Part shown: positions 50,218 through 61,098 of the stretch, in pieces
Layout of the letters: each line of letters begins with the position of its first letter
How positions within the stretch are numbered: position 1 is the first letter of the stretch
NCBI GenBank assembly: GCA_904063045.1
Contig: CAJFCJ010000011.1
Coordinates: 1,054,001-1,118,000, forward strand
DNA length: 64,000 nt
Origin: Dimorphilus gyrociliatus
Taxonomy: Eukaryota > Animalia > Annelida
Reading direction: 5' to 3'
The notes under the pieces: model-generated
What the model was told of the DNA's origin: nothing
The model's database searches: none
What the model saw: the letters and a program-made list of their open reading frames with translations, nothing else
Program-made: the position numbers and the translations under genes

Positions 50218-50418
50218 AATAAATGTTGTAAGTAATATCGTATCCAATTTTGTAATGTTCTAGTTTCATAGATAATATTGTTTAGCGTTGATTCCATAGC
50301 AAATAAAAGATATGCTGTTATCAATATTGGTACTGAAATTATTCTTAAACGATGAATCATAGAAAAAAGATTATTGCTTTTATTAAAAGAACAGAATAAA
50401 TGGAAAGTTTATATTATA

Positions 50419-51885
50419 TTAGATATTGTATATTTCATTAAATCGCCTTGTATGTTTGTCTTCTATTTCTGTTTGTTTTTTCGGTCCTAATTTATGAATA
50501 AAAAACTTTAAGTTAGAAAGCAAAATTTATCGACCAATACCTTTTCTTCTGGTAAGTCTCATAAATATATGCACTAAACTGAACAAAATGTATAATCCAA
50601 CCCATCCAGCTAAGAGTATGACTAAAATTTCCCAAGGAAAATTACTAGCTCTTAATGCTTTGTATTTGTGAAATTTATCCTATCGGTTAATAAAATATGT
50701 TTGTTTATATTGTCAAATCATGATAGATATTCATAGATTACCAAATTTTTCCTGGTATGATCTTTAATTTTCTTTTCGTATGTATACCGATGTTTAATCA
50801 AACCATCTATAATACAATCGTCGTCAACATCATGAACAAGAATACCGTGGGTTGTACGTTGGACAAGTGACCCCAAAATTGTTATGGTATTCAAATTACT
50901 AGTATTAACCAAATTAACAATTTCAGCAGCGCTGTATTGGTCAACTAATGCAAAATGTATATGTCCTGCCACTAGACTCTCCATCACTCCTTTCAAAGTC
51001 TGAAAATCTGTAGGAAGATTATTTGGTAAATATATTTGATTCCAAAGATATATTTTATAAACCAAAATGGCTTACATATAGGATTTCCAGAATCATCGGT
51101 GATTAGTTGAATTTCAAGGGAACCATTGATAACACCAATGTCTTTCTCTTTTAAACTCAGTCTGTTTATTTCCTTTGCAGTTAGACCCGATGCTATACTT
51201 GCAGTGAATAAAGAAACTATTGCCAAACTATAAACTGCCCAGCATACTGTGATAATTTTACCAAAGATAGCTTTTGGATATTTATCACCGTACCCAACTG
51301 TTGTCATTGTTACACAAGCCCAATAAAATCCTTCAACTATCCCTTTGTAAGGTTTATTAGAAAAATGATCCTTATTTTTCCATTTTTCCTTTTAGTATAT
51401 ATATAATTCGTTAAATGTTAGAAATATAAAATTAAATACCTTACAATTAGCCAAATAATAAGACCAACATAGGCACTTCCAACCAACATGACGAGTAGAT
51501 GCTGCCAATAGCCAATAATTTGATTAATTTCAGCCAAACCAGGGTAGTCTGGCTGATTAGATAAAATAAAAGCTTCTGTTGATTGAAGGATAGGAACAAA
51601 TTTTCGATCCTTTAATTCTGGTTCAACTCCGAAAAAGTCTGTCTTATGAGAGTATGGAAATAACAATTCTTCATTTTCCTGCAGAGTTCTCATCTCCTCT
51701 AAATTATTATATTTGTTATAATAAGCCTTTTCAAGAATATTATTACAGCAATCTTTCAAAGATTTATGTATTAAATTTAAAAAGTTGCCAAAAACTCGAC
51801 CATCTTTTGTTAAGTAGCTGAAAGGCTTAGATGGAAACCATCCCATGTTCAGTAGTTGACTATTATTCGATGAACACTCCTTCAT
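50419..51885 (-). CDS. GluR0/AvGluR1-like ligand-gated channel with K+ filter (TVGYGD), paralogue 3
   Basis: Exons 51885-51445 (S1+M1), 51388-51076 (pore helix [20 protein letters not shown]3 [11 protein letters not shown]), 51007-50742 (S2), 50679-50541 (M4) and 50486-50419. All junctions are GT-AG and phase-consistent. Confidence 0.85.
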
Positions 51886-52581
51886 AATTCCAGATTATAT
51901 AAAATCTGTAGAATACATATACTAGAATGAATAATATACATTATATATATGTCTATTAATTAGAGAGTTTATCTAAATATTATATTGAATTTTAGCTATT
52001 TAGTTATAATAATACACACCTGATTACTTATCTAGCTTACTAAATTTCGAAAACTCCCATCTGTTGCAGCTCAAACTATCAAAAGTATATCGTACATCAA
52101 TTATGTGTAAGTATATGTTATGAATAGTACCATAACCCTGGTATTAATTTACTATCCAAACACTAAAGTATCTCAAGTTATGCAATGTTGTTTAATGTAA
52201 TAAATGAAAACTTGCTTTTTCATTATTCATAAGGTAGGTTTATTATTAAATATTGTATATTTCAAATAAATTAATGGAAATGAATTTAAAAAACAACGAT
52301 TATGTCGAGGTATTTAACTTTTAACTGGTTCACAAATAAATACTCTACAGTACAAACATATAAACATTTTTTATTGCAAAAATGTGTTTTATATTATATT
52401 AATAATCTATATATGACGTTCTTAGTTTACTTACATGAATATTGGATGAATTACATATATAAATAAATAAAAAAGATATATTTTCAAAAATTTATATAGT
52501 TTAAATAGAATACTAAACTACCATTTCTGCTATAAGTCATCTATTTTGAAAACTTTTTCCAGAGATAGACATTTGAAAACT

Positions 52582-53920
52582 CTATATATGCCTTATGCAT
52601 CTAGTATCGTTATTTTTATGTACCCTCTGATATACATAAACTATAAGAACAATAACTAGCCAACAAGACATTGTCACTAGAATTACTGGTAAAATCGTTT
52701 CACCTTGGCTTTTCATCATGCGGTCTTTATTTATGATCCACTTCTAAAAAATAATGATTAATTCACTTAGTTAAGTGTTAACAAAGCATATTCTATCTTA
52801 CTGTTAAATATTTTTCGCTGATGTTGTTAAATAGAGAATATTTTTTCTTTCTACTAGCTATAGTTTCTAGTAAACACTTGTCCGGTCTTCCCATTACTTT
52901 TAAGCCAAATATTTCATCGTACTCATAATTATCTACTATTCCAATTGTTTTATCTTTTAAACCTTTATTTAGAATGTATACTGCTGGATATTGGCCAATT
53001 AAACCATAAGATACTTTCTCACTAGAAACGCTTTGAAGAACTTCTTCCGTAGTATTGTATTCTATGAATTATTCTATTTTTACTATTTTATTAATATAAT
53101 ACAAGAAGAATATTTAAAATTTTCGCACCAATTGGCACACCACCTTTTGACAAGCATACTCTCCGTTCTTCCATATCTTGCACAACTGATACTCTCTTAA
53201 AAAGAAGTGTAGGAGCGTTAAGAGCCCCGTCGAAATTTAATTCAAAAGTAATATTTGCCGTGAACACAGACATCATTATTAAACTGATTAATATCCAAAA
53301 TAAAGTAACAACTTTACTAACAATACGCTTTGGATATCTATCTCCATATCCAACAGTACTCATAGTAACGAAAGCCCACCAGATACCTTCAAAAATTCCA
53401 ACTAATGCGTCTTTTGGAAATTGTTCTTTATTTATTCTCCTTTCCTACAAAAATTCAACTCTAGGAGATAAAACCCTTATTAATAGTTCGTACAAACCAT
53501 AAACCACATTAAGAGTCCGATCCAGGCTGTAGCAGATCCAAGAAGTAAGATGAATTTCCAATATGATAATATCAATATTATATTTTCATTAAAAAAGTTT
53601 GTATGCTCTTTCTTAAATAAAAACCCTCCATTAGATTCTATTACTGGTATGCTATATATATCATAACTATCGTAGCCTGCTACTGGTATCCTCGATTTGG
53701 AAAGGAAGGGATATGGTAGTAGGATATTATCTCTCCCAACGGATAATCTCATATCTTTGATAGATGAATACTTAGAAGAATATATAACACTCTTATTCTT
53801 CCAACAGGTTTTAGCAATTTCGTCAATTAGTTCTACAAAATATCCTTGTACTTTACCTGACTCTGACAAGTATATAAATGGAGGCATTTCAAGCCAGCCA
53901 ATACTTATTGAGCTATTCAT
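52582..53920 (-). CDS. GluR0/AvGluR1-like ligand-gated channel with K+ filter (TVGYGD), paralogue 2
   Basis: Exons 53920-53498, 53444-53129 (ERRINKEQFP...IWWAFVTMSTVGYGDRYPK, M3 SVFTANITFEL), an S2 exon ~53062-52802, and an M4 exon ~52743-52582. Intron positions and phases match paralogues 1 and 3. The C-terminal end is uncertain. Confidence 0.85.
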
Positions 53921-54548
53921 CTTTGAGTTCGTAGTTTCATATAATTATTTCATCTAAATGAAGTAATAATTGCACTATAATTTGAATCAAACAAAAGTAA
54001 CACAATCAATAAGCGTATTCATTAGTTTATACAATTTAACGCTTGTGTAGAGAAACATATTTATATATATATACTTCATTTATTTGAAATTAAAGTAGCA
54101 TTACTGCCAATGAAATTCAAGGACGTGATAAATAATCTATATGTATATTGCTCTATCAAATTACATAATTTCTATAAATCTATAAATGATTTATAGCAAT
54201 TTAAATTTATTTAGAAATATATGGTATTCTTATTCATACGACCTACTTTACTTTATTCTAGTCTAGTAATCTTCCTTTTCTTTTATAGAAAATCTTGAGA
54301 TATCTTTTCTTTCTTTATTCAAGAAAGACACCACGTTCAATTATTCATAAAACTAGCATTTTGTAGTCGTATGTGTTATAGTATAAAATGGATTTCTAAC
54401 GAAACAGATATGAATCTGTTAACTTGAAATAAAACAAAGGTCTTTTCATCTTTTGAAAATACGCATGAAGTAATAACAAACATCAAAGTGCACTGACTTT
54501 TAAAGTTCACAACTTTAATAGCACATGAGGGTAAACAGTTTTCTTTTA

Positions 54549-56049
54549 TTATTTCTCATATAATTTTACAAATTTCAACGAAAAGTAAACTAAAAATATT
54601 GAATAAATATAAATAGTCCTATACAATTTTCGGCACCTAATATCTTTTGATGGAATGCACAAGTGACCTGTATTAGAATTAACAGACACAAGGCAATTTT
54701 TTTTTGAATTTTAATAAACAATTACATTTTTGACATATACCGATAGTAGTAACAATCAAAAGCCAAGAAGATGTTGAATACACAAGAGCTTGCCATGATA
54801 CCGTACCGTACTGACTTACACTGAAATCTTCATTTAGAAGAGTACTCTGTAACAGCATAAATGAATAAAAAGATTATCATAATTTTCTTATCTATTAGCT
54901 TAAAAAACTTATGTTGTATTTACTTCAATATAGGCTACGGTTATATTTCTAATGGCGGAAGAGAATTTTCTTCTTCTACGAGCAATATTCCGTAAGAAAC
55001 ATCTGTCGAGCTTCTTCGTCACTTTAATGCCGTATATTTGTCTATGAGGAAAGCTCTCTACAATTCGAATGGAACTTTTTTCATTGAGATTTCTTTCAAG
55101 AGCGTGAACAGCTGGATAATGGCCGACTAGAGCGTAATTAGTTTCTTCCTTTTCAACACTCTCAAAAATTTCTTTCAAAGTGTTAAATTCTATTTTAAAA
55201 ATGTCGTAATTACGTTCTAATATATTATTTTGAAAATTTTAATCAACTTTACTTACCTCTTGGTCGACCTCCTTTCGCTAAAGTTATACCCACGTCTGAA
55301 GACCCAGTCATAACAGCTACTGTCTTATATAGTATATCATGAGTATACCGAATGCCTTCTAAATTTAGTTCTAATGTTATATTGGCAGTGAACACTGATA
55401 CCAATATTAGACTAATTAATATCCATATGACAGCGAAAAGTTTACCGACAATGCCTTTTGGATACTTGTCGCCAAAACCAACAGTACTCATTGCTACAAA
55501 AGCCCACCAAAATCCTTCAAAAACTCCTCTGAAAGTATCAAGGGGAAAAAATTCTGAATTTTTTTTTCTCTCCTAAAAAGGAGATATAAATGCTGTAATG
55601 CAGGAAATCAAATACTGTATACTTACTAAAATCCACATGAACAAGCCGGCCCATGTAGTTGCCGACATTAAAAGTATCAAAAATTTCCAATAAGACATAA
55701 CCAAACCTATATTTGTGTTAAAAAATCTCCATTTTTCTTTAAAAATCAAAAATGAACCAAAAGACTCGGTAACTGGCAAAAATCTTCCTACAGATGGAGG
55801 AAAGTATACCTCAGACAAAGCTGAATCAGGAATGGACGGATAAGGCAAAAGAATGGTTTCTTTATGCTCTGAAAACTCTAAATCATCAACAGTCATATAT
55901 TTAGAAGTATAGACAATGCTCTCGTTGTTCCAGCATATTTCAGCAACCTCATTTATGAGCTCTATGAAGTAACCTTGTATTTCACCTTTATCTGATAAGT
56001 ACGCTAGAGGTGGAAATTCATGCCAACCAACAGTTATTGAGCTACTCAT
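54549..56049 (-). CDS. GluR0/AvGluR1-like ligand-gated channel with K+ filter (TVGFGD), paralogue 1
   Basis: First in-frame ATG at 56049 (MSSSITVGW). Exons S1+M1 (to ~55628), pore/M3 ~55573-55258 (FWWAFVAMSTVGFGDKYPK, SVFTANITLEL), S2 ~55190-54921, and M4 from ~54846. The N- and C-termini are uncertain. Confidence 0.85.
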
Positions 56050-56490: not shown

Positions 56491-59400
56491 CTAGTCTTTA
56501 TCTTTTTTATCGTCTTTTTCTTCTGTGTCATACTCTTCTTTTGATTCAATGTCCTCATCACTTTTAATTTGCCTCTCTTCTTCGGCACTTAAAAAGTCTA
56601 CGTCACTATCAGATTGAATGTTATCTGTTGAATATTGCTCCAAAGGGGGCATACTTGATTCTCGTTCAGTGTGTACATCATCACCTCTATTTCCGTCTTC
56701 GTCTTCATCTTCATCTTCATCTTTGTCTTCATCTTCATCTCCGTCTTTATCAGAATTTTTAGGTGAGGGAGCCTTATATCCTATTGTTTCTTGAACAACA
56801 TCTAATTCAGATTGTAAACTCTCGGCTGTATCAGATAGGTCACCATCTTCATAATGTAACATCTTATAAAATAAGGATGACTCATTTCTGGATAAATTCG
56901 CAGGGTCTCCTTGTTCCATGACCCTACCATCTTCTAAAACAACAACTATGTCAGCATCGAGGGCCATGTGTAATCTCCTTGTAAGTACAATTATAGTAGA
57001 ATATATTAATTGGGACCTTAAAACTCTTTGGATGATGAAATTGGATTCTTCATCAATATTTGCAGTGGCTTCATCAAGTATTAATATCTTTTTTTGTCTT
57101 AGAATTGCTCGAGCGAGACAAAATCTTTGTTTTTCTCCAAGTGACCATTTTCTTTCTATTTCAGATGTTAACTCTGTTTCCATCTCTTTATTGTAAGTTT
57201 TAATAATTTCTTCCATTCGAACTCTATTTAAAACATGCCAGAGAGCTTCATCTTCGTAAATGTCAAAAGGGTCCAAGTTCTTTCTAATAGAAGAACTGAA
57301 CAAGAAAGGACTCCGTGTAAGGGCCGAATAATGAGATCTTGCAAGCTCCAATGGTATATTACTAATATCAACACCATCAATAATAATATTCCCATCCGGC
57401 TCTGTTAATCTAAAAAATGCACTAACCAAAGATGATTTACCAGCATCCTTTTTCCCGACAATGCTAATTTTCTGATGCTTTTTACGGATTTGTAAGAAAA
57501 TATTTATAAGTGAAGGATCCGAGAATTCATCGTATCTGTAGAAACATATAAAGCTTATCTATAAATAGCCTAAAAGGTTCACCATTGTTACCTTAACATA
57601 ACTTGTTGTAGTGCAATATGAGGTAGTTGACCTCCGGTCTTAAGCGAATAAGCAGGTCTGTAGGTATATTTTTCTTCAATATCCAAATGAGTTAGAGTTA
57701 ATAATCGTCTGACAGATATCATTTTTCTTCTTAATTCAAGGCATGCTCGACAAAAGTTTGTTAAATAATCTAAATTAACAGAATTGTGAACCAGGAACAA
57801 GCCAACAAGAATTAAATTCAGATCATTGGCTTTGATTATACATATTAAAATAGCAATAGCAAAACACGTTGTGAAAATAATTTGTAGTCGTATTATTAAC
57901 CACTGATATGCGCTTAAACAGTAAAACTTTACAGTTGTATAGTCGTTTAGGGTAGAATAAAGTTTCTCAAGTAAAACTTTACTCATTTTATATGCTCTTA
58001 AATTCTCATGTCCCGTAAATACGTCATGTAAACAACCAAATAATCGACATAGATTGTTAATTTCTAATTTTTCAAAATCTCTAATAGACGGTATTGGTAT
58101 TCGAATAACGAGAAAAAACCATATAATTATAACAGCAAACGGGATAAGCGTCCAAGGCATGGCTATAAACATTATTATAAGGCTACCAAAGCCATAAGCC
58201 CCATAAGTTATTATTTGATAGGCAATATCATAAATTTCATTATCAATTACTATGGTATCCTTAAAAAATTTCGATAGGATGCCTTCCAAGCTATTCACTT
58301 TAAAAAATTTTAATGGAGCCTCCAAAATATTAGCCACCGCTTGGGAATAAAGTTCATGTGATGCTTTTGGTACAAAGACATTAATAAGAAGATGTAGAAT
58401 CAAGTTTAAAAACCACATTATTCCAAGTAAGATACCAATTAAATGTAGATTTTTCTTATTTATACCATATGTATAATATTTCGTAATTAGATAATCAATA
58501 CCTAAATTTAACCCAACGCAACTTACTAAAGCTATCAAAATAATGAAGAAGAGCCGAACAGCTCCACCCCTTTTAGTGTAGTCGGATAGCGTATTTAGCA
58601 GACTTGTTTCTTCATCAATAATCTCCTCGTATAAGTATGTTGTATTGTCTTGAACAATTTGATCTTCTTCAACAAGAATATCTTTAAATATATTATTCAG
58701 CATTTTCTCTGCAATTTCATTCTTTTCACCTTCATGAACAATTCTACCTTTATTCATAATAATCAAACTATCGACTTTAGACAAAATCTGATGATTTTGA
58801 GTAACGATAACTGCTGTTTTAAACTTTAGGAACTTCTTTATTCCTCTATAAACAGAAAGTCTTTCGTGTTCTGGTAACGTTTGAAAGGGTTCGTCCAATA
58901 AAAAGATGTCAGCGTTCTGATAAAGAGCTCTGGATAAGGAGATTTTTGACTTGTCCGTATCCTTAATTCGAAATCCTCTATTACCAATAATCGTCTGAAT
59001 GCCTGATGGATAATTTACGCATTCCTCTTCCAAATGACATATTTTGATTATCTTCCAAAATCTTTCATAGTCGAATAAGTTTGGGCCTATAATGTTTTCT
59101 CTAACTGTACCATTAAATATCCATGGAGTTTGGGGCAGATAGCTTATTTTGCCTCTTACTATCAGCTCTTCAGCTGATACTGGAATTTCTCCTATTATCG
59201 CTCTTAATAGAGTAGACTATAGTAAATTAAATTTATTACAAAAAATACTTTTGCATAAGTTATTTATGGTGCATATTTAGATAATTACCTTTCCTGAATT
59301 ACAATGGCCAGTGATATAAGCAATTTGTCTTTGTTTAACGTATAAGTTTACATTGAAGATACTACTGCCAACAAAATCATACTCTTCTACGGTAGGAGGA

Positions 59401-61098
59401 CAATCTCCATCCTCTTCAGTAAGTTTACCATGAGAAAATTTTGTTGTATTTAACTCTTCAATAAAGATAGCGAAACGTCGCTTTTTTACAACATCGGTTT
59501 GCGAAGACCTTTCTTCACGTTGAAGATCTTTAGAATTCATTATGTCCTGAAATCCTTTGATACTATTTAAGCAAGATTGAACTTTACTTATTCCCCAAAC
59601 ACCATTAACAAAGATATTCCATTCGATAATATGTAATAATATCATTGTTTTAAATAAAACAGCAAGGTGGAGGTCAGACGTTTGTAGTTTATCATAAATA
59701 CATATTAGTAAAATCAGCAGTATGAGTATTTTGCTTATTGTATCCCTAAAACTAAGATAGAAAATCCTTATTGCTGAAACAATACTCTTATACTTTAATT
59801 CAAATGTTCTCTTTTCTTTAATAATCATCTTAAAAGCTTTTTCCCAGACGTACATTTTAATTACACTTATTCCACATATTATTTGTTTCATTAGTATATT
59901 CCTATCAATAATCAAACTTTTACACTTTTCTCTTGATTTTCCTGTAATAGAATTTGAGAAGAGCATTGAATATATTATTTACAATCAACTACTACCTTCT
60001 AAATAGCTGCTTACAAGAAAAGTTGATTTTATTATTAGGTATATAACCAGGAAATAGTATACATAACTCCCAAAATCAGCTGCTATTATAAAAATAATGA
60101 TAATATTGGCAATGGTTGCTAAGAAGACGTTAAATAATGAAATTATTTCTGTGTAAAGAGTATCGGCTTCGGTATGAAGGAGAAAGATTAAATTGTCTAC
60201 ACATTTCGACTTTAATTCTTTATGAGAAGGCGCAAATATGTTCTGGAATATTGTTTTTTTGTTAAAAGTAACTTAGCGTCTCTTTTAATATTCAAAAATT
60301 GTATCACATACCTTTCTGGCAATATTGAGAGTAATTGTCGAAGAGATTCTTGTAACAACAAGTCGATTTTCGTGTTCAATAGTTGATTTTAAAAAGTTAT
60401 GAATAATAAGAACAAGGAATAATTCCAACGTCAATAAAAGTCCCCACCAAATAGAGTTATAGCTCCCATTTTTTTCCAAAAAATTTATTAATGACTCAAT
60501 AATGTACGCAATGGATACCTTAGATATTTGCTAATTAAGTTAGTTATAAAATTAATATGTATTTTCTCCCAGTATAAATCAATTAGATGTTATGTACTCA
60601 CAGTAATTACAGACAGGATTCCTATTATTAATAAGCTCCTTGGGAACATATGAAAAAGCATCTTCATTAAAAAGATATAAACACTTTTGTCTATTCCTAG
60701 TTTTTCATATTTTCTGTGGGAATAGAAAAGATATACTTGAAAAATTTCTATTATAAATTGATCTCTTATAGCTTTTTATCAGTAAAAAAGAATTTCCCAT
60801 TAACAGCTTACTCTCTAAAACAGGAATCTAAACATTGTGAAGAATATTCTGGAGGCAGAGGTCCTAAATCTTCTTTCTCAAATTTCTTTCTCCATCTCAT
60901 ACTAAAATAACCTTCAATCCACCTAGATAGACAGATACCGTGTGTATGTCTTTATAAGTCGCAATTACATATTTCGTTTACAATTAAAGATATATTTTGT
61001 ACTTACCATACTGTAATCTGCGAAAATATGTTTTTACTGACATAAACCGATTTCTTCTCCTCTTTATCGGCTAGTAATTCATTGTTTTCAACCGACAT
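56491..61098 (-). CDS. ABCC: ABCC-subfamily (MRP4/CFTR-type, no TMD0) full transporter with degenerate ATPase motifs and acidic tail
   Basis: The N-terminus NIFSQITVWWIEGYF resembles the ABCC lasso. Architecture is TMD1-NBD1-TMD2-NBD2. Walker A motifs are GHCNSGKS and GKKDAGKS; Walker B motifs are FLLDE and LILDEATANID; IRKNLDPF is present. About nine exons from ATG 61098. Confidence 0.88.

Follow-up and report, generated by a model that had tools for sequence, protein, structure and literature searches.

The stretch of DNA analysed here, 64,000 nucleotides (nt) from the miniature marine annelid Dimorphilus gyrociliatus (contig CAJFCJ010000011.1 of assembly GCA_904063045.1, positions 1,054,001 to 1,118,000; hereafter the window, in whose own numbering all positions are given), carries three paralogous genes that lie head to tail on the minus strand between 50419 and 56049. 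We refer to them as g1, g2 and g3. They encode proteins of 408, 386 and 390 amino acids, respectively, and the domain order in all three is S1 - M1 - pore helix - TVG(Y/F)GD - M3 - S2 - M4. A preliminary description of the window, made from the sequence alone, had announced three tandem, intron-containing animal genes at this place, and this is borne out down to the very ends (50419 closes the g1 stop codon and 56049 opens the g3 ATG). The pairwise protein identity is 45% between g2 and g3, and 28% between g1 and either of them.

The gene models were obtained by three-frame translation combined with a search for GT..AG exon boundaries. The coding sequence of g1 comprises 51885-51445, 51388-51076, 51007-50742, 50679-50541 and 50486-50419, with the TAA stop at 50421-50419, and the protein ends in a short basic tail after M4. 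The coding exons of g2 are 53920-53498, 53444-53129, 53061-52802 and 52743-52582, and those of g3 are 56049-55627, 55572-55257, 55189-54924 and 54846-54679. The coding introns are GT..AG in every case and 53-77 nt long, and the first three occupy homologous positions in the three genes, with phases 0, 1 and 0. The preliminary description had counted four shared introns; three are indeed common to all, but the fourth, C-terminal one (50487-50540, phase 1) is used in g1 alone according to the transcript contigs, its junction having been refined from the sequence by the GT..AG rule. The 5' untranslated region (UTR) of g1 covers 51886-51905 and, across an intron of 114 nt (51906-52019), a leader exon of about 65 nt that extends from 52020 upward to 52084; the joint 51905->52020 is present in a transcript contig. 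The D. gyrociliatus genome has been reported to have a median intron of 66 bp and no operons (PMC7854359), and both the intron sizes of g1-g3 and their organisation as separate genes fit these traits.

Spliced transcripts, on which the preliminary description had made its case depend, were found for the three genes. Contigs of the public sequencing runs X1 and X3 match the window at 100% identity and remove exactly every predicted coding intron, and an X1 contig also skips the 114-nt 5'-UTR intron of g1. The g2 contigs of both runs skip 53445-53497, 53062-53128 and 52744-52801, while those of g3 skip 55573-55626, 55190-55256 and 54847-54923. The g2 and g3 transcripts pass their stop codons unspliced, that of g2 being continuous across 52392-52743 and 53497-54011, and that of g3 extending from 54526 to beyond 56150. 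Since introns are removed and the depth of both runs drops to zero in the intergenic DNA between the genes, X1 (tool-labelled '?') and X3 ('DNA?') were taken to be complementary DNA (cDNA). Run X2, which holds an unspliced stretch, is probably the source of the genome. Thus, g1-g3 are transcribed and spliced.

The same contigs correct the public annotation. The model DgyrCDS8581 (669 amino acids; 52582-56049) is identical over its residues 354-667 to residues 20-333 of g2, and its residues 1-353 are 95% identical to g3, with a gap of 17 amino acids in M3. It therefore wrongly fuses g3 and g2, for which the RNA contigs show two separate transcripts, and the fusion omits the 17 residues of the g3 M3, the end of the g3 M4, the first 19 residues of g2 and the g2 exon that encodes M4.

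We then considered the pore module, which is encoded by exon 2 of each gene. The selectivity filter reads TVGYGD in g1 (51284-51301) and in g2 (53340-53357, preceded by the pore helix EGIWWAFVTMS), and TVGFGD in g3 (55468-55485), all on the minus strand; a six-frame motif scan returned exactly the positions described before and no fourth copy of the motif elsewhere in the window. In Pfam, exon 2 matches Ion_trans_2 (E 6.2e-14, 1e-13 and 2e-13 for g1, g2 and g3), Ion_trans and Lig_chan, the last at 33.0-34.3 bits with a gathering score of 30.8, so that, judged by sequence, the assignment as a pore is not a matter of chance. The best sequence matches of the pore in the PDB are KvAP, Kv and KcsA, and with the family profile introduced below such K+-channel pores match at E 1e-13 to 1e-15. 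The pore helix, the filter and the inner helix match those of the two-transmembrane and Kv-type channels KcsA, KvAP and Lmo2059, although these K+ channels lack the S1/S2 clamshell and M4, and their orientation in the membrane is presumed to be opposite. Over 139 aligned family and bacterial sequences the filter is invariant, bar rare Y/F or conservative changes (g3 has the F), and in more than 100 metazoan members the pore helix, taken together with the filter, hardly varies. The claim that g1-g3 possess a K+-channel pore with an intact signature is in this respect well founded.

On either side of this pore the proteins resemble ionotropic glutamate receptors (iGluRs). After M1 all three carry E(R/K)..N.(E/D).F, and in M3 a putative gate, SLFTAS in g1 (51197-51214) and SVFTAN in g2 (53253-53270) and g3 (55381-55398), read from the sequence and the spliced gene models; the motifs previously quoted for these two places are thus present. 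The M3 motif corresponds to the iGluR gate SYTANLAAF but retains no more than its core (SLFTASIAS in g1, SVFTANIT in g2 and g3), and its T and A are conserved at 91-100% across the family. A hydrophobic M4 segment follows S2 in the three proteins. By contrast with this eukaryotic feature, which had been predicted, there is no amino-terminal domain (ATD), as had also been predicted: g1-g3 begin 4-14 residues before the first strand of S1, and an N-terminal extension is excluded because there are in-frame stops upstream in g1 (TAA at 51897-51895) and g2 and no upstream ATG in g3. Nor was an upstream coding exon present in the transcripts seen for the three genes.

The preliminary description had expected Pfam to return SBP_bac_3 beside Ion_trans_2 or Lig_chan. 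The two pore-region families were found, as stated, but SBP_bac_3 appeared only below threshold, in exon 1 (S1, E ~1e-3), and exon 3 gave no match; the clamshell was for this reason assessed by its predicted fold. An AlphaFold2 model of g2 residues 20-333, taken from DgyrCDS8581 354-667 and built on an alignment of 127 sequences, reached a predicted local distance difference test score (pLDDT) of 90.6 and a predicted template-modelling score (pTM) of 0.80. In VIA-align, the top matches of this model were the GluR0 ligand-binding cores (1ii5 at Z 17.9, 2.6 A over 191 residues, and 2pyy at Z 16.8), followed by glutamine- and arginine-binding proteins. Chains of AMPA and NMDA receptors covering the ligand-binding domain (LBD) and the transmembrane domain (TMD) aligned over ~290 of the 314 residues with Z ~15, and such chains were the best matches in Foldseek, at a probability of 1.00. 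M4 was modelled only in a paralogue, DgyrCDS8531, whose full-length model (pLDDT 82) shows a signal-peptide helix, an M4 helix at 434-474 and the same fold matches. S1 and S2 are accordingly modelled, as had been proposed, as a bilobed clamshell of the GluR0-like or periplasmic-binding-protein type that is split by the pore module.

Sequence profiles point to the same wider homology. A profile of the metazoan family only reaches M3-S2-M4 of GluN1 (E 2.5e-11), and once bacterial members are added the profile aligns the plant receptor GLR3.4 from S1 to M4 (E 2.6e-21). A metazoan profile restricted to S2 finds the substrate-binding domain of GlnPQ (2e-12) and the LBDs of GluR0 (4e-9 and 6e-7). 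The 60 best matches of this S2 profile include no LBD of a eukaryotic iGluR, and the LBD structures of the rotifer receptor AvGluR1 are absent both from these 60 and from the 50 best VIA entries. Relatives of g1-g3 carry the precomputed annotation Lig_chan PF00060.

Next we analysed how widely this design occurs. Run exhaustively in HMMER, the exon-2 profile returned 1,657 cluster representatives at E <= 1e-10, which include bacterial GluR0-like proteins of ~350-370 amino acids and eukaryotic proteins of 440-570 amino acids. Those among the latter that are named belong to cnidarians (Nematostella, Acropora, Stylophora, Pocillopora, Actinia, Exaiptasia, Dendronephthya, Hydractinia and Rhopilema), hemichordates (Saccoglossus, Ptychodera and Glandiceps), the brachiopod Lingula, the annelids Owenia and Capitella, and the flatworm Macrostomum. 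Nearly all of these members are named 'uncharacterized' or 'Potassium channel domain-containing protein', and a few have automatic names such as 'Cubilin'. The full-length identity of g1-g3 is 25-31% to the Saccoglossus, Glandiceps, Ptychodera, Lingula, Owenia and many cnidarian proteins. D. gyrociliatus itself has at least two further members, DgyrCDS8531 and DgyrCDS12770, both with a signal peptide; the former (510 amino acids, seven introns, 1952 nt) lies on the same contig as g1-g3, ~125 kb before the start of the window. A cnidarian subfamily of ~730 amino acids carries CUB and Ig domains before the clamshell, at the position of the iGluR ATD, and in some entries from Pocillopora and Actinia this place is taken by FN3 or sidekick-like arrays. 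Elsewhere, CUB domains occur in Neto, an auxiliary protein of iGluRs.

In a maximum-likelihood tree of 73 sequences, which contains neither AvGluR1 nor canonical iGluRs, 30 bacterial-like and 43 eukaryotic sequences are split at 100% in the Shimodaira-Hasegawa-like approximate likelihood ratio test (SH-aLRT), and g1-g3 form one long-branched clade (96% SH-aLRT). The introns tell of the age of the family. When three relatives were mapped onto their genomic loci, three introns were found to share their alignment positions among g1-g3, DgyrCDS8531, a Nematostella gene and a Glandiceps gene: a phase-0 intron that follows M1, a phase-1 intron within S2 and a phase-0 intron that precedes M4. The intron that g1 has behind M4 ('RRK|G', phase 1) corresponds to the post-M4 intron of the Glandiceps gene. 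The shared introns imply that the family predates the split of cnidarians and bilaterians and was inherited vertically, and g1-g3 are a local, divergent, fast-evolving expansion of this ancient metazoan family. The Nematostella and Glandiceps genes have two extra introns that are absent from all Dimorphilus copies, of which one splits the codons of the filter (TTV|GYGD, phase 2) and the other lies where S2 begins; their absence agrees with reported intron loss in D. gyrociliatus.

These data bear on the name 'GluR0-type' used in the preliminary description. GluR0 of Synechocystis (Slr1257) and its bacterial relatives share with g1-g3 the order S1 - M1 - P (TVGYGD) - M2/M3 - S2 and the lack of an ATD, and it is to the GluR0 ligand-binding core that the modelled LBD of g2 is structurally nearest. 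However, the bacterial proteins have no M4 (their rows are gapped there), form the separate clade mentioned above and retain the residues that hold the ligand, whereas g1-g3 have M4 and spliceosomal introns. In the alignment the S1 arginine for the alpha-carboxylate is present in 29/30 bacterial GluR0-like proteins but in only 17/106 metazoan members, 89/106 lacking it. The S2 aspartate or glutamate for the alpha-amine is kept in 30/30 bacterial proteins, 97/106 metazoan members and g1 (D). With M4 present and ligand residues missing, the label is imprecise.

Comparison with eukaryotic receptors gives a similarly mixed picture. Canonical animal iGluRs (AMPA, kainate, NMDA, delta and epsilon) and plant GLRs share with g1-g3 the LBD-TMD fold, M4 and the FTA core of the gate, but they lack a K+ filter, are non-selective cation channels, have an ATD and keep the ligand arginine; on filter and ATD g1-g3 are the opposite. 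AvGluR1 (Lomash et al. 2013) is an animal iGluR that combines the TXVGYG signature with an M4, and it is seen as a transitional form that links the iGluRs of prokaryotes to those of eukaryotes. It is described as having the modular architecture of eukaryotic iGluRs and as being gated by many amino acids (PMC12226733, PMC11479355), whereas g1-g3 are without an ATD and without the canonical amino-acid-binding residues. The chemosensory ionotropic receptors (IRs) of insects and other protostomes are, like g1-g3, often devoid of an ATD, arranged in tandem arrays, fast diverging and depleted of canonical ligand residues; unlike g1-g3, they derive from AKDF-type iGluRs and have cation-non-selective pores with no GYG filter. 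Because the fast divergence in tandem and the degenerate ligand site resemble those of IRs, a chemosensory or heteromeric role for g1-g3 would by analogy be plausible.

Each of g1-g3 encodes a subunit of the iGluR superfamily which combines a clamshell, a K+ pore module and an M4 of the eukaryotic type and has no ATD, and we consider it probable, if by no means settled, that these subunits form ligand-gated inhibitory K+ channels. Four of them would assemble into a channel oriented as in iGluRs: the clamshell would face the outside, and the pore loop would dip into the membrane from the cytoplasmic side. On closing around its ligand the clamshell would pull M3 open, and K+ would then flow through the canonical filter, hyperpolarising or shunting the cell. 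The ligand would probably be something other than a classical alpha-amino acid, and g1 could act as the ligand-binding partner, with g2 and g3 as modulatory subunits. Such a function is plausible. The age of the family and the near-invariant pore speak in its favour, while the degenerate ligand site and the lack of signal peptides in g1-g3 make it less secure.

Several observations weigh against this interpretation. The first concerns the ligand site, at which the poor conservation of the S1 arginine across the metazoan family has already been described; among the three proteins, g1 and g3 lack the arginine, and its presence in g2 is doubtful (SKSR is possible), and the S2 aspartate is replaced by Gly in g2 and g3, residue calls that come from sequence alignment, in which loops may be misaligned. 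The clamshells may consequently bind no ligand, and g2 and g3 in particular may be non-binding partners. Because the arginine is not conserved and g2 and g3 have lost the aspartate, gating by glutamate or another classical alpha-amino acid, which the preliminary description had in view, is doubtful, and it appears unlikely that the family are classical amino-acid receptors. The second concerns the route to the membrane: no N-terminal hydrophobic segment or signal peptide is present in g1, g2 or g3, so that the ~120 residues of S1 would need to cross the membrane unaided. Relatives of g1-g3 do carry signal peptides; either M1 acts as a reverse signal anchor, then, or g1-g3 behave unlike their relatives. 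Thirdly, a search for close relatives of g2 gave two bacterial proteins only and no orthologue in other species, and constraint on the g1-g3 clade is therefore not demonstrated. Fourthly, given the labels of the runs, the cDNA nature of X1 and X3 is itself deduced. Finally, the signature motif alone does not settle selectivity, since the reports on AvGluR1 conflict: this receptor is called K+-selective in PMC11479355 and PMC12226733, yet a review describes it as Na+-permeable despite its TXVGYG (PMC3483616).

This last point leads to the alternative that survives best, although we regard it as unlikely: the same architecture could form non-selective cation channels, and hence excitatory ones, in which the K+ signature is ancestral sequence retained in the inverted context of an iGluR. 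Besides the Na+ permeability ascribed to AvGluR1, the GFG of g3 in place of GYG would agree with such channels. GFG filters are, however, K+-selective in several K+ channel families. Moreover, the pore helix and filter, which are of the KcsA/Kv kind and near-invariant in the metazoan members, argue for selection on a K+-type filter, and GluR0, with the same pore, is reported to be K+-selective (Chen et al. 1999).

A lower probability attaches to the idea that the clamshell no longer binds any ligand, in which case g1-g3 would be K+ leak channels, or channels regulated otherwise, or silent accessory subunits of paralogues of the DgyrCDS8531 and DgyrCDS12770 type. The losses of the arginine in g1 and g3 and of the aspartate in g2 and g3 are what one would expect of it, as are the long branches, the lack of a signal peptide and the existence of other family genes in the same genome. 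Nevertheless, the LBD fold is predicted with high confidence and all three open reading frames are intact and expressed. IRs and delta receptors, in addition, bind ligands despite having lost canonical residues.

More improbable still is the orientation of a K+ channel, in which the N-terminus and S2 would be cytoplasmic and the pore loop would dip in from the outer face; g1-g3 would then be sensors of an intracellular metabolite or proteins of an organelle membrane. This topology is self-consistent, in that S1 and S2 lie on the same side, and it would account for the absence of an N-terminal hydrophobic segment and of an upstream coding exon in the transcripts. The distribution of charges speaks for the iGluR orientation instead, with K+R counts of 14/6, 12/3 and 12/3 for the three proteins in the flanks that would be cytoplasmic and extracellular in an iGluR, so that the positive-inside count favours it; homologues have signal peptides, and conserved cysteines in the LBD of the family suggest an oxidising compartment.

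Lastly, that g1-g3 are decaying duplicates or stem from a bacterial GluR0 gene acquired recently by horizontal transfer has hardly any probability left: the divergence of the paralogues to 28-45% identity and the failure to find close orthologues would suit it, but the intact reading frames, conserved pore and gate motifs and spliced transcripts led us to reject pseudogenes, and the eukaryotic clade (100% SH-aLRT split), the M4 that bacterial proteins lack and the introns held in common with cnidarian and hemichordate genes led us to reject recent transfer.

The genes that flank g1-g3 are of other kinds. Directly upstream, on the same strand, lies an ABCC-type transporter gene (56491-61098), whose C-terminal open reading frame has a long acidic tail. 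On the other side, a STRA6-like gene follows on the minus strand with its ATG at 50360, the stop codon of g1 lying only 58 nt upstream of it. One X1 contig of 3491 nt continues from g1 into this gene, while the X3 contig ends ~123 nt past the last g1 junction. A fusion protein of g1 and the STRA6-like product was rejected, as g1 stops at its TAA and the genome paper reports no operons; the X1 contig suggests that, in this compact genome, UTRs overlap or transcription reads through. An identical stretch of 15 nt, atattgtatatttca, occurs at 50424-50438, near the end of the g1 coding sequence, and at 52249-52263, upstream of the g1 leader exon; it is probably a chance repeat in AT-rich DNA, and it gave spurious read joints.

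The preliminary description had also suspected an expanded family for which no functional work was known. Family members were found, as detailed above, and no paper on the family was: a metazoan family with a K+ filter and without an ATD is not mentioned in a metazoan iGluR phylogeny (PMC6307864), in a eukaryote-wide phylogeny of 2025 (PMC12226733), in a 2026 paper on ligand selectivity, in a 2026 preprint on the glutamatergic system or in the D. gyrociliatus genome paper. A description of it was not found in the full-text literature searched either, whose coverage largely leaves out subscription journals, so that an earlier description is possible. The family, a branch of the iGluR superfamily that joins an LBD like that of GluR0 to a K+ pore and an M4 of the eukaryotic type, is thus apparently unstudied.

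Fast inhibition in animals runs via Cl- channels of the Cys-loop family or, indirectly, via G-protein-gated K+ channels. The direct opening of a K+ pore by ligand binding is known from bacteria, in GluR0, and the single rotifer case, AvGluR1, is disputed. A whole metazoan family of this design exists, it is old, as its cnidarian-bilaterian introns indicate, and it is expressed. We tentatively propose, at lower confidence than the reading of g1-g3 themselves, that animals from cnidarians to hemichordates and annelids keep an overlooked class of ATD-less receptors, each a directly ligand-gated inhibitory K+ channel with a ligand other than a classical alpha-amino acid, of which Dimorphilus has a fast-evolving tandem cluster without signal peptides. 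If its members are K+-selective and ligand-gated, they would be a new class of inhibitory ionotropic receptor; they would bear on the origin of iGluRs from a binding protein and a K+ channel, and on the time at which M4 was gained, and proteins of ~390 amino acids would offer small natural scaffolds for chemogenetic silencing.

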